Below, one piece after another: positions 1 through 17,064 of a stretch of 64,000 nucleotides of DNA. The stretch's first letter is position 1. Every line of letters starts with the position of its first letter. Under the pieces are notes generated by a model. The model did no database searches and was not told where the DNA came from. It saw nothing but the letters and a program-made list of their open reading frames with translations. The translations under genes were made by a program, and so were the position numbers. Source of the stretch: Adineta vaga (Eukaryota; Animalia; Rotifera); the NCBI GenBank assembly GCA_021613535.1, contig CP075497.1, forward strand, positions 7,130,001 through 7,194,000, written 5' to 3'.

Positions 1-215
1 TCAATTTGTTATTGTATTCTACATACAAACAATGAATTGCCTAAAAGAACTTGTCGTACATGTAAAAAGAAATTTCATGATGCTTGTTTAGTATGTTTCT
101 TTTTAATGAAAACAATAAGTGAATTTTTAAAATATATTTTCTTCTCGTATTTTAGTTTCGCTGGTTTCGATCATCAAATAAATCGACATGTCCTCATTGC
201 CGTGCGAACTTTTAA
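1..215 (+). CDS. LTN1: E3 ubiquitin ligase listerin, 3' end (C-terminal RING); gene starts before the window
   Basis: Exons 1-90 and 156-215 (intron 91-155, GT..AG) give [49 protein letters not shown], matching the listerin C-terminal RING pattern ([27 protein letters not shown]). Confidence 0.9.
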
Positions 216-354
216 TCTATTGAGTTTTTCGTTGTATTTGATTGCTTTTAGCTTCTATCACTTGTTTTTTTATATAAATGTGTTATACGGAATTTGCTCT
301 CACAGAAAGAAGAAAGACATACAAAAGAAAGTATTCTTTAGTTATAGATAATCA

Positions 355-1660
355 ATGCCGGTCGATAAAGCAAAAGAATCAGCAGCTCTTGCTGCAGTTA
401 ATGAACAAATTAATAATGTAGGTAGAGAAAAGAAAGACGAATGTTTTTTTTTGTCAAAATAAGAATTTGATTTTTCAGAATGTGCATATCATTGGTATTG
501 GATCAGGTTCAACAATTGTTCCAGCAGTACAAAGAATTGGTACGAAGTTAGAATTGTTTGATTTGAAATTTATTTGAAATTTATAGCGGAATTGGTCAAG
601 AAAGACAATCTTGATTTGATTTGTGTTCCGACTTCATTACAAGTGTGTATAGAAATAATTCACCTACACCCACCCTCATCATGAATGATTATCTTCTGAC
701 AGACAGAAGAATACTTAGTGACTATGGTTTAGATATGATTCCTCTAGTTGTCATGTTTTTGCATGTTGTCTGCTGCTATTTCTAGGCAATGCTTAACACA
801 CTCTTCGTATATTGATATAAGAAATGACATGATTATTTGCTTTTCGGAAATTTATAGATTGTTCTTATAATCAGAATGTTTTTTTTTCGTTCTAGGCTCG
901 TGATCTGATACTTTCGCATGGTTTAAAACTAGGTAGTCTTGTTGAATATCAAGAAGTAAGTATTCTACTTTCAATCCTCTTCTTTTGATTTGTACTCTTT
1001 TCTTTAGCTTGATCTTGCTATTGATGGTGCAGATGAAGTTGATGAACAATTCAACTGTATAAAAGGAGGTGGTGGATGTCAAACACAAGAAAAACTTGTT
1101 GCTATTTGTGCAAAGAAATTTATCGTTGTTGCTGATGAAAAGTAAACGAAATCAATAAATATCCATTGTTCTTTGAAACAAAATACTTTTCACTATCAAT
1201 TAGAAAATGGTCAACAAATCTTGGTGATAAATGGAAAAAAGGTATACCACTTGAAGTTCTTCCAATAGCTTATAAAATTACAAAAAAAGAAATTGAAAAA
1301 CAACTTGGTGGTGAAGTTGTTGTTCGTGAAGGAACTGAAAAAATAGTAAGATTGATATGATTTACATTTAATTTACAAGAAAAACTAATTTATTAGGGTC
1401 CAGTATTAACAGATCAAGGCAATTTTATTCTTGATTGGAAATTTGATTCTTCAAAAGTTTCAAATTGGTCGGATATAAATCAAAAGTTAAAATTAATTCC
1501 TGGTAACCTATTTCATTCTATTTATTTATCCACTGTATCTATCTTCTTTTCAGGTGTCGTCGAAACTGGTTTATTTATCAATATGATTTCAAAAGCATAT
1601 TTTGGTAACAGTGAAGGCAATGTTCAAGTCAAAACAAATTCAGCAATAGTTTCTGCATAA
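355..1660 (+). CDS. RPIA: Ribose-5-phosphate isomerase A, multi-exon
   Basis: Spliced exons contain [57 protein letters not shown] and [10 protein letters not shown], all RpiA motifs. ATG 355, TAA 1658-1660. Confidence 0.95.
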
Positions 1661-1743
1661 TTTTGTTTTCATATTTTTCTTGTGTTCGGTGAAAATGATC
1701 TTGTAGTGTTTAGATTTCTTTTTCAGATAAGATTCTATTCGAA

Positions 1744-3087
1744 ATGTCAGAACATCCCTTATTAAATCCACCAACTGATGGAATTACAGCGGTGCATTTC
1801 TCACCGAATAATCAAAGCCAATTTTTACTCGCTTCATCCTGGGATGCTTCAGTTCGGTAAGTTTCTCTTCCTATTGTTTAAATGATGCAAGTATTTCTGT
1901 TCTGTAGTTTATATGATGTTAATCAACATACATTTCGTCAAATGTATAAACATGCAGCTCCAGTATTAGATTGTTGCTTTATAGTAGGTTTTGTTTTTTT
2001 CTTTTGAAATCTAAATTTTTCTGAGAAAACGAATGTTTTTCGTAGGATTCTACGCGGACAGTTAGCGGTGGTTTAGATCGCCTTTTGAAAATGTTTGACT
2101 TCAATACACAACAAGGTAAAAATCATTCATCTGAAACGATAATGAGTAAACGTCCAGTCTAATTTTATTTCTAAGAAACCGTCATGGGTTATCATGATAA
2201 TGCAATACGGTGTGTACATTATTCACCTGAAATTAATATTCTTATCACTGGTTCATGGGATTCAACACTTAAATTTTGGGATTCACGTGTACCTAATTGT
2301 ATTGGTACCTGTTCATTACCTGACAAAGTAGATTCATTTTGAAAAATAAGAAAGAAAGAAAGAAAGATTTAACATTTCTTTTCTATCTATAGATTTATAC
2401 ATTAGATAGTGTTAGTGAATTACTTGTTGTCGGTACTGCACAACGTAAAGTATCAGTTTGGGATTTACGTAAAATAAGTACTAATACACCGATTGAAAAT
2501 CGTGAATCAAATTTAAAATATCAAACACGCTGTATTCGTTGTTTTCCTAATAAACAAGGTTATGTTCTTAGTTCAATTGAAGGTATCTATCTAATATCAT
2601 TTACTGGATTTTTCAATATTTATTCTTGATATCAATTAGGTCGCGTTGCTGTGGAATTTTTTGATGCAAATCCTGAGATTCAAAAGAAAAAATATGCATT
2701 TAAATGCCATCGTGCAAAAGAAGGTGCTATTGAAAATATATTTCCTGTGAATGCGATTGCTTTTCATAAACAATATGGAACATTTGCAACTGGTGGATCC
2801 GATGCATTTGTTAACATGTGGGATGGTGCCAATAAAAAACGTTTATGTCAATTTCATCAGTATAATATTTTCTTAATTTAATTCTCGATAGTAATTTTTC
2901 GTTTCTCTTATGTAGATATCCAGCTGGTATTACAAGTTTGGCTTTTTCACCTGAAGGAAATATGCTTGCCATCGCTTCATCCTATAACTATGAATATGGT
3001 GCTGATCCACAACAAGCACCAAATGATATTACAAAAAATAATATTTTTGTTCGTCGTGTATCTGATTTAGAGACTAAACCAAAATAA
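1744..3087 (+). CDS. BUB3: Mitotic checkpoint WD40 protein BUB3, multi-exon
   Basis: [91 protein letters not shown]. Confidence 0.95.
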
Positions 3088-3158
3088 AAAATTGTTGTTG
3101 TTGTTATTGTTATTCTCTAGGATAAAGAAAAAAAAATGTGAATGTATATATTCTTTAG

Positions 3159-3694
3159 ATGGTTGACGAAACACTTTTTGATTATCTTCATATGTCCGTT
3201 GTTGAATATTATTTCAATGAAAACGAGAATGACGTCGATTCATCAGTGTTATGTTTATCACAAATAGGTAAAACTATTGTCTTTTATTTACGTTGTTTAC
3301 TATATATCATTCGATAGGTTATCGAGTTGGTTATTCACTTAGTGAACGGCTTTCCAGAGAAAATCCTCGATATCGAGATGAATTAGATACAATTAAATAT
3401 TTGTGTAAAGAACTTTGGATTTGTTTGTTCAAAAAACAAGTGGATAATCTACGTACAAATCATCAAGGTGTCTACGTCATTCATGATGGACGTTTTCGTT
3501 TATTACAACAAACACTTTTAACAATGAGTAAACCGATCGATGCTACTAATCGATTACATACATTGTATATAGCATATTCAACGGGTTTAATACGTGGTAT
3601 TCTAACAAATATGGGATATCCATGTCGTGTTACAGCAGAAATTGCAGATTTTGGCGTGAAATTTCAAATTGACATGACATTAACCAGTGGATAA
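3159..3694 (+). CDS. TRAPPC6: Trafficking protein particle complex subunit 6 (Bet3 fold)
   Basis: MVDETLFDYLH, short intron, then GYRVGYSLSERL..DELDTIKYLCKELW..FKKQVDNLRTNHQGVYVIHD..GLIRGILTNMG. Confidence 0.92.
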
Positions 3695-4038
3695 AATAAG
3701 AACAGAACGTTTTCTTTTTATTTGATTTTTCCGAAATTAAATTATTGATAGTGAAAAATTTTGATTCTATATAGTAAATTTGATTGAATATATCATAAGA
3801 ATACATGTTAGTGTCATCTATCGAAGATAAGTCTTTTTTGCTTTTGAATTTTCATTAAGTCCTAGTTTTGATTCAATGGAAAATTTATTAACAAGAAAAT
3901 GATGTTTTAAAACAAAATTATCTTTATAAGATTATATATGACTAGACGAATATGAAATTTTCTTTCTCATTTCTCGGTTCAGTTTCATATAAATATCTTT
4001 CTTTTTTCAATCGGTCTGAAAATTTATTCTATCATATA

Positions 4039-4987
4039 ATGACGTCATCCATCTCTAAGAATCGTTGTAAACTTTTAGTTCTTGATCTCGATGTCAACCA
4101 AATCAGTATTGAAGCTTTACGTAAATATTTCACTGCCTATGGACCAGTTGAATGGATTCAACTCTTTCCAGAATCGACCTCTGCTATGATCTATTTTGTT
4201 AGTTATCAAACTGTTGATAATTTAATTACTCATCGAACATGTTCTATTGGTCAAAATCTTGTTCGATTACGTCGATTTCGACTTGATCAAAATAATTGGC
4301 ATATTGATTCTCATACTTTATATATAAAATTCAATTCAAATCATATATTAACAGAAGAATGTTTACATTATTGTTTTCGAGATTATCAATGTCAAATAAC
4401 AAAAATCGATATGCTTTACGATAATCAAGCATTGATTTCATTTTCAAATTATGATTATGTTGATCAAATTCTTCTTATGCCAATAAATACATTTCAAATT
4501 GATAATACTCCACTGGTCTTCGAACGAATGATGGAAAAGATTAAGAAAAAATCTCGTTGGGATCAAACATCAACTCCATTAGCATCGGTACCAGTTTTAG
4601 CTGTTCGAGATCCTCTCACTCATAAATTAATTAATCATATTGAATATTTAACAAAACAACTTCGAGGTATAAAACTTCTTTATTTAGTTTAATAATAATT
4701 AATCAAAGGTACATTCTTGTTTTTTTTAAGAACAACCAAGTCAAACTGAAAATAAAATTAATCGACTTGAAGTTGAAGTTTTTAAATTGAAGAATGAAAA
4801 TGCTAAATTAAAATCCAAACAGAATGTAGTATCTCACCATACTATTGAACAACGTTTAATGACATTAGAAGATATTTCTAATCGATTGATTAATAATCAA
4901 TATCATCAGAAAAATCGACGAGAACGAAGTTACAGTAAAGAAAAATCATCGAAACGTCGACGAAAATATAAAATTAATGATGATTAA
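4039..4987 (+). CDS. Divergent two-RRM protein with ULM-like KKKSRWDQ motif, coiled coil and basic Arg/Ser tail
   Basis: Exon 4039-4667 (LRKYFTAYGPVEWI..AMIYF; ALISFSNYDYVDQIL), intron 4668-4730, exon 4731-4987. Confidence 0.7.
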
Positions 4988-15857: not shown

Positions 15858-17064
15858 TTATTTTGATTCAACGGAAAGCACTTGATTTTCATAATAAAAT
15901 TTTTCTTCAATCTAAATATATAATCGAGAAGTGTTCATTAAATTAAAAGCATACACAAAACAAACTTTTCCCAAGAGTACATTCCAGAAGAGGTTGATAT
16001 CAGCATACGATTTAAATCGTCGACAACTTGCTACTAAATTATAACCCCATTCCAATTGTAAAAGTTCATCATCAGGAAAACGTTGTTTGAAATAAATATG
16101 TACGAAATCAACAAGAGAGATTTTTACATATGATTTTGATGTTTCTACTGATTGTCGTTGTGAATCATATTCGATTTTCTAGATGAATTCGAAACATTTT
16201 GATTTTTATAAACGAATATATAGAAACAAACTTGTTTCCAAATATCTTCGATTAAAAGTGAGACATCTCGTTGCATAAAATGTCGATTACGAATGCTTGC
16301 TGTTGTTTGTAGAAACGTTGGAACTTTCGAATCAAAACCCAAACCAATAAAATGCAGAACATTATTATACTAAAAATGTCACATCCTCAAAATATCAAGT
16401 AAACAAACGAATAGATTCTATACAATATCATTGCCACCAATGATTTCATTAAGTAAAATATCAACACGTTCATTACTTGTTTTTCCAAGAGATAATTCAT
16501 TCCAACGTTCAACAATAGATGTACATCGTTCCCATTTTGGTCTAAATATTCATTTTTCAAATGATTGTTCGATTTTCATTCGAAATACCTTGGTGTTAAT
16601 GTTGCACGATAAGTTTCACATAATGTAAAATATTTATCTCGATCTTTAATCAGATGGTCAAGTTTCTCTTTCAATGTACTACGACTTAAAAAATAACTTG
16701 AAAATGATTTTAATGAAAGTACAAACTTGTATTCAACTTTAGCATTACGAAAATTTTGTTTTAATTGTTCCGATGATTTGATAAGTTCATCGTAAGTTTG
16801 TTGAAGAGCAAGATAATCATTTTTAGGAACATATTCTTTATTGTCTTCTTTTAATTTTGCTATGCGACGTTCAGCTTCTGCACAATCAAGACGACATCGT
16901 CTAAAATTTATTAATAAATCTTCATTTTCTTACAATATTTGTAATGTAAACGATTAAAACCTAATCGCCACACGAAGTAAGACTGGATCATCGAGAGCAG
17001 TATTCAATATTGTATTAATATATTCTGATGGTTTATCAATAAGACTTGTTTTGAAATCGTCCAT
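15858..17064 (-). CDS. Coiled-coil protein resembling translin-associated factor X-interacting protein 1 (short form)
   Basis: Spliced model has RATLTPRPKWERC, HFIGLGFDSKVPTFLQ..RNRHF.QRDVSLLIEDIWK and EWGYNLV, recalling TSNAXIP1 motifs from memory; ATG 17064, TAA 15860-15858. Confidence 0.55.

Follow-up and report, generated by a model that had tools for sequence, protein, structure and literature searches.

Is a row of closely spaced genes in a bdelloid rotifer transcribed gene by gene, or as one long precursor that is divided into separate messages by spliced leader (SL) trans-splicing? This question is raised by the first 3.7 kb of a stretch of Adineta vaga DNA of 64,000 nucleotides (nt; contig CP075497.1, positions 7,130,001 to 7,194,000; the window in what follows), in which the 3' end of LTN1 is succeeded by RPIA, BUB3 and TRAPPC6, head to tail and all on the + strand. 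An earlier reading made from the letters of the window (the sequence-only reading) had seen here four unrelated housekeeping genes on one strand, separated by stop-to-ATG gaps of 139, 83 and 71 nt, and the same arrangement and spacings were recovered when we read the window directly and recomputed them from the stop and start codon pairs, TAA 213-215 and ATG 355, TAA 1658-1660 and ATG 1744, and TAA 3085-3087 and ATG 3159. The start codons of RPIA, BUB3 and TRAPPC6 match the annotated starts of their orthologues, and an in-frame stop lies shortly upstream of each. As set out below, RPIA, BUB3 and TRAPPC6, possibly with LTN1 as the first cistron, are probably transcribed into one polycistronic precursor that is resolved by SL trans-splicing.

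The arrangement is not confined to the window. Comparison contigs were obtained through TRAPPC6 look-ups, and every bdelloid TRAPPC6 contig that we examined is genomic, not RNA. LTN1, RPIA, BUB3 and TRAPPC6 follow one another in the same order and on the same strand in five of the six long Rotaria magnacalcarata contigs (L014 and L016-L019), as well as in the metagenome contigs L024 and L027; RPIA-BUB3-TRAPPC6 is seen in L011 and L025, and BUB3-TRAPPC6 in L012 and L026. Gene order and short gaps recur in this way in up to seven distinct lineages, comprising R. magnacalcarata and bdelloid-like contigs, and the comparison of synteny and spacing that had been suggested alongside the sequence-only reading thus finds both of them kept among the bdelloid lineages examined. 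The downstream neighbour of the cluster, a gene whose first exon lies at 4039..4689 in the window, is missing within 6 kb in R. magnacalcarata, where the four-gene cluster is intact, a hint, resting on one comparison, that the cluster stays together more firmly than its flank. In a profile search, no monogonont (Brachionus) TRAPPC6 was present among the 120 matches listed of 2074.

Each of the three downstream genes begins behind a conserved acceptor-like site on the + strand. Gap 1, between LTN1 and RPIA (216..354; 139 nt, with 104-136 nt in three other lineages), ends in tandem acceptor-like sites at 334..347, TTCTTTAG (334-341) followed by TTATAG (342-347), which we propose as the SL acceptor for RPIA; the second of these sites reads TT(A/C)TAG, followed by AT, in all four lineages compared. 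In gap 2, between RPIA and BUB3 (1661..1743; 83 nt, with 72-140 nt in five other lineages), a pyrimidine tract with CAG spans 1715..1726, and we propose its TTTCAG (1721-1726), which lies 17 nt before the ATG, as the SL acceptor of BUB3. TTTCAG|AT is invariant here in six of six lineages and belongs to the one long stretch without variable columns in the alignment, spelling TTTCAGAT. Gap 3, between BUB3 and TRAPPC6 (3088..3158; 71 nt, with 63-134 nt in six other lineages), closes with a second occurrence of TTCTTTAG (3151..3158), the proposed SL acceptor for TRAPPC6, and a YAG directly abuts the TRAPPC6 ATG in seven of seven lineages. The acceptors have thus been kept between lineages whose gaps differ in length (63 to 140 nt) and, for the most part, in the rest of their sequence. 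Strong acceptor-type motifs occur in the window at a density of ~0.002 per nt, which gives a chance of ~4.5% that one lies within 20 nt of a given ATG and of ~1e-4 that this happens at three junctions running, conservation not yet counted.

The acceptors ending at 347, 1726 and 3158, the last of them abutting ATG 3159, had been named in the sequence-only reading and can be read directly in the window. The same reading had found no convincing upstream donor for them, and inspection of the gaps by eye agrees: no usable cis donor was seen, the only GT sites being too near the acceptor or no more than 25 nt from the LTN1 stop. At the TRAPPC6 junction, a functional rationale for the acceptor suggests itself. 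Two upstream ATGs, at 3136 and 3142, lie shortly before it, the latter opening an out-of-frame open reading frame of 41 codons; they would stand in the way of translation if retained in the leader, and would be lost through trans-splicing at 3158.

That rotifers trans-splice SLs has been known since 2005. For the machinery in A. vaga, we scanned the assembly (100.8 Mb, 6 contigs, 30% G+C) for the leader itself. The published 23-nt rotifer SL (PMC3795323, Table 1) is present in ~62 copies, each followed by a GTAA or GTAT donor, indicating that the machinery for SL trans-splicing is present, in keeping with the premise of bdelloid trans-splicing on which the sequence-only reading had built. The SL RNA copies often form head-to-head pairs ~155 nt apart (for example L002:1340-1560), and clusters of them are found on contig 5 at 9.88-9.93 Mb and 10.91-10.93 Mb (G000:C5). 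Point variants of the leader exist, such as A for C at leader position 9 in at least eight copies, and some donors read GTAT, not GTAA. A second leader class of the SL2 type was not found within three mismatches of the SL, where there is one family with point variants only; a very different leader would lie outside the reach of this search. Two environmental cDNA contigs begin exactly with the rotifer SL, indicating that the leader heads real mRNAs. We also observed that an SL-started environmental cDNA contig (L038:1-488, minus strand) encodes a Rab2-like protein and carries a 488-nt tail after the stop, in which a CT repeat, ATTGGAT and TGTGAATGTATTAG resemble what L011 and L024 have in gap 3; next comes a short frame that opens with ATG and ends in GTAAG, and the tail may run into a next cistron.

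What, apart from the acceptors, do the gaps contain? They had been described as largely U-rich. This is true of gap 2, which at 52% T lies above intron composition, and gives nothing distinctive for gaps 1 and 3: T makes up 42-52% of the gaps, as against 45% of the introns nearby and 43% of the ordinary intergenic DNA behind TRAPPC6. With gap 2 alone exceeding intron composition, U-richness was dropped as a distinguishing mark. More specific are A-rich hexamers at a conserved place in each gap, which we infer to be candidate 3'-end signals of the upstream genes. In gap 1, a conserved A/T block, TATATAAAT followed by GTGTTATA (271..279, + strand), could be either the poly(A) signal of LTN1 or a TATA box of RPIA; in the window it follows the LTN1 stop at a distance of 55 nt, and it reads TATAAA there and in L024, CATAAA in L014 and TATCAA in L027. 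The hexamer of gap 2, AAAATG (1692..1697, + strand), is by its position a candidate weak poly(A) signal of RPIA; AATAAA, AATAAG or AATATG stands at this site in other lineages, 30-36 nt before the acceptor. For BUB3 there are two candidates on the + strand, an AATAAA that overlaps the stop codon (3083..3088) and, within gap 3, the conserved block TGTGAATGTA (3137..3146), which may be a poly(A) signal or a branch-point region and which creates the upstream ATGs mentioned above. This block contains TGTGAAT in six of seven lineages and TGTGAAG in L025, with L027 reading TGTGAATAAA; it continues with GTA, ATA or AAA and is separated from the acceptor by 11-16 nt in four lineages and by 29-37 nt in two. 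L025 and L027 have the canonical AATAAA in gap 2, and L011, L024 and L027 have it in gap 3, where L025 has ATTAAA.

TGTGAAT was also considered as a general signal in front of AG|ATG acceptors and was rejected, as the genome holds 338 matches at a spacing of 8-25 and 335 at 68-85, and the excess of TGTGAAT over a reversed-pattern control is compositional. At 16150-16185 of the window, the acceptor TTTTCTAG abuts ATG 16183, a candidate gene start, with TGTGAAT 18 nt upstream, resembling the TRAPPC6 junction.

The gap after TRAPPC6 offers an internal contrast to the three gaps of the cluster. It measures 165-345 nt, like an ordinary intergenic region, and begins with a poly(A) signal ATTAAA (3736..3741, + strand) 42 nt after the TRAPPC6 stop, which would mark the end of the unit; in five of five lineages, ATTAAA or AATAAA stands ~40-50 nt after this stop. 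On its far side, a TATAAATA box (3988..3995, + strand), 51 nt before ATG 4039, has the appearance of an ordinary promoter outside the cluster, and four of five lineages (the window, L011, L013 and L024) have a TATAAA 41-51 nt ahead of the next ATG, joined in three lineages by a TCAGTA initiator-like motif in the same gap. No TATA or initiator (TCAGT-type) motif, in contrast, occurs in gaps 2 and 3 of any lineage compared. The exon that follows (4039..4689, + strand) is the first of an RRM_PARP14_3-like gene outside the proposed unit; its PARP14-type RRM matches PF23085 at 1.6e-08, and the gene stands beside TRAPPC6 in L011, L012, L013 and L024, not in R. magnacalcarata.

Put together, these features would allow the following course of events. 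A single promoter would drive the unit. Within each short gap, the upstream mRNA would have its 3' end formed at the A-rich signal, and the 23-nt SL would then be trans-spliced onto the conserved acceptor ending at 347, 1726 or 3158, thereby capping the downstream RNA, so that the mature 5' untranslated regions (UTRs) of RPIA, BUB3 and TRAPPC6 would consist of the SL plus 7, 17 and 0 nt, respectively. The unit would end at ATTAAA 3736, and the next gene would use its own TATA promoter. Towards the 5' side, LTN1 starts at G000:C6:7124353, ~5.6 kb upstream of the window, behind ~1.2 kb of non-coding DNA, indicating that the cluster does not extend further in this direction. An acceptor-like CATTTAG|AT precedes the LTN1 start 33 nt upstream, with CATAAAT further upstream (G000:C6:7124290-7124353; L034:290-353); LTN1, the first gene of the cluster, may also be trans-spliced.

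A resolved polycistron is not the only way to account for such a locus. Monocistronic SL trans-splicing is common in every phylum that uses SLs, and the four genes could simply be independent and compact, their short outrons being trans-spliced to the SL as in the SL1-only genes of C. elegans, with no functional polycistron. That the start of LTN1 also lies behind an acceptor-like site, despite the long non-coding stretch upstream of it, would fit this picture, as would the TATAAA-like block of gap 1 with a TCA ~30 nt downstream, and the conserved blocks of gap 3 (TTG repeats and TGTGAAT) could be promoter elements, not 3'-end signals. Gaps 2 and 3, however, with their 63-140 nt, would have to house the 3' UTR and poly(A) signal of the upstream gene as well, and they lack TATA and initiator motifs in all lineages, whereas the next gene downstream shows both. 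Moreover, RNA polymerase II normally passes the poly(A) site, and read-through to an acceptor 11-65 nt away would be hard to avoid. We regard four independent genes as unlikely, if far from negligible. One may go further and suppose that the locus undergoes no trans-splicing at all, the acceptor-like motifs being by-products of U-rich DNA, start-codon context or poly(A) downstream elements, and the genes being capped in the conventional way. The non-coding DNA, with 42-52% T, is indeed rich in pyrimidine runs, and a search of metagenome contigs for the SL-TRAPPC6 junction (10 nt of SL plus the conserved start) returned 0 matches, a blank that means little in a collection holding only two contigs with SL+AT. 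What makes conventional genes very improbable is that the exact YAG has stayed where it is in all lineages compared (4/4, 6/6 and 7/7) as the bases around it diverged, at a chance expectation of ~4.5% per junction, and that a TRAPPC6 leader left unprocessed would be encumbered by ATGs 3136 and 3142.

Within the polycistronic interpretation, the junction between LTN1 and RPIA is weaker than the other two, given the TATAAA-like block as a possible promoter of RPIA, and this is the first of several observations that count against the polycistron. The block is followed 29-37 nt downstream by TCA in three of four lineages, as would fit an internal promoter: in the window, TATAAA 273-278 lies 29 nt before the A of TCA 300-302, and in L024 and L027 the distance is 33-37 nt. 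Gap 1 is also the longest of the three gaps, in the window as well as in L024. The operon could accordingly comprise RPIA, BUB3 and TRAPPC6 only, with LTN1 as a separate gene that ends in the signal region of gap 1; RPIA would then start at ~302 from the TATA at 273-279, and the SL might, or might not, take the place of its ~46-nt outron at 348. Yet two lineages show the block in degenerate form, as CATAAA in L014, where a TCA at the right distance is also lacking, and as TATCAA in L027. Among the hexamers available to LTN1 in the gap, none but this one resembles a poly(A) signal; its distance from the stop is in the range of the signals of the other genes, and GTGTTATA directly after it resembles a GU-rich downstream element. 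This three-gene version, whose probability is contained in that of the polycistron at large, appears doubtful to us. As for the SL-resolved polycistron of the sequence-only reading, it is supported in part: layout, SL genes, conserved acceptors and the absence of core-promoter motifs from gaps 2 and 3 fit it, and the TATAAA-like block qualifies it at gap 1.

Further points weigh against the polycistron. The candidate hexamers of the window, AAAATG in gap 2 and GATAAA or AATGTA in gap 3, are non-canonical, AATAAA being found in some lineages only. Conservation over whole gaps is moderately above that of the homologous BUB3 intron in three lineages (z 4.5-7.3 versus 2-4.9) and shows no excess over the intron in the two most distant lineages; since the whole-gap excess is only moderate, the conservation signal lies in blocks and not in the gaps as a whole. 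The conservation of gene order could partly reflect slow general rearrangement, there being a single comparison of a flank. In L015, one of the R. magnacalcarata assemblies, the DNA upstream of a BUB3 intron is different; structural variation, a transposon insertion or misassembly could account for it. Compared with L019 and L014, homology of L015:1-4816 begins inside this intron, and JmjC, CFAP300 and DZF genes take the place of LTN1 and RPIA upstream; the span of BUB3 differs between R. magnacalcarata assemblies from 2.1 to 3.1 kb, and the intron in question contains an inverted repeat. Finally, SL use, co-transcription and 3' ends at this locus are all deduced from DNA.

SL-resolved operons are well known in nematodes, tunicates and flatworms. 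The operons of Ciona intestinalis (PMC1488885), in which intercistronic DNA is scant or lacking, resemble the cluster in their single SL family, very short gaps, acceptors at or near the start codon and unrelated housekeeping genes. The likeness may extend to gap 3, where in four lineages the A-rich hexamer precedes the acceptor by 11-16 nt, which is the usual distance from signal to cleavage, so that poly(A) site and acceptor may, judged by position only, be one and the same, as in Ciona. The candidate signals of gaps 1 and 2, unlike in Ciona, stand 30-65 nt away from the acceptor, and a short intercistronic stretch would remain; Ciona also belongs to a different phylum, and the 23-nt SL sequence is unrelated. 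It is possible, and we put it forward tentatively, that the cluster is an operon hitherto undocumented in Rotifera that is older than the split of the compared bdelloid lineages, is served by a single SL and, in the manner of Ciona, forms the upstream poly(A) site at the acceptor or a few bases from it.

With the SL2-type operons of C. elegans, the cluster shares same-strand genes ~100 nt apart, the succession of 3'-end signal (here a candidate one), U-rich stretch and trans-splice acceptor (here a proposed one), and the preference for housekeeping genes. It differs from them in having one SL family with point variants and no second leader within three mismatches. SL1-only monocistronic genes are likewise similar in their conserved acceptor near the start, the lack of a cis donor and the removal of upstream AUGs by the SL, which is predicted here for TRAPPC6; these genes have their own promoter and outron, however, for which gaps 2 and 3 leave almost no room. 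Operons have also been described, in 2025, in the chaetognath Paraspadella gotoi (PMC12460157), and chaetognaths are gnathiferans, as are rotifers. The chaetognath operons are backed by RNA data, whereas the present cluster is known from DNA alone, and the leaders differ; the same study argues for independent origins of operons.

In rotifers, operons had not been reported as of 2021 (PMC7986045), in agreement with the remark in the sequence-only reading that they are not well characterised, and no later report was found in the literature searchable. If our interpretation is correct, rotifers would join the nematodes, tunicates, flatworms and chaetognaths as animals with polycistronic transcription, which would bear on the joint or repeated origin of trans-splicing and operons, especially in Gnathifera, and would change both the annotation of bdelloid genomes and the reading of co-expression in them. 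The locus adds a clean and conserved four-gene candidate whose own downstream side, an ordinary promoter gap behind TRAPPC6, serves for contrast.

The identities of the four genes were established by searches exon by exon, not with joined full-length spliced proteins. The part of LTN1 (listerin E3 ligase) in the window (1..215, + strand) consists of an exon at 1-90, an intron at 91-155 and the last exon at 156-215, with the stop at 213-215, and encodes the RING-type C-terminus; exons directly upstream match PF22999 and PF23009 above cut-off, corresponding to the LTN1 HEAT region and the UBC-like domains, and the R. magnacalcarata orthologue in the same position is an Ltn1-domain protein of 1702 amino acids. 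RPIA (ribose-5-phosphate isomerase A; 355..1660, + strand, ~8 exons) matches PF06026 on the three exons 1008-1142, 1205-1345 and 1397-1501, at best with 2.7e-19. The WD40 gene at 1744..3087 (+ strand, ~7 exons) falls into the BUB3/RAE1 clade, within which single-exon searches of PDB and Atlas were not decisive. The sole other member of this clade in the genome, on contig 3, is a RAE1 orthologue (2e-89 to human RAE1), so that the window gene is, by elimination, the mitotic checkpoint protein BUB3. A second, ohnologous copy of the cluster was sought in the same genome and not found; TRAPPC6 and BUB3 are single copy.

TRAPPC6 (TRAPP subunit 6; 3159..3694, + strand) is composed of exons at 3159-3267 and 3318-3694 and matches PF04051 at 9.7e-29 and human TRAPPC6B at 6e-30, its nearest recorded relatives being TRAPPC6 proteins of Rotaria species with 85-90% identity. 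The intron between the two exons (3268-3317), 50 nt long and placed after codon 36, is found in the window and in R. magnacalcarata (gene span 555 nt, 163 amino acids) and is absent from L011, L012, L013, L024 and L027, where the gene is one open frame; the intron thus represents a presence/absence difference among bdelloids.

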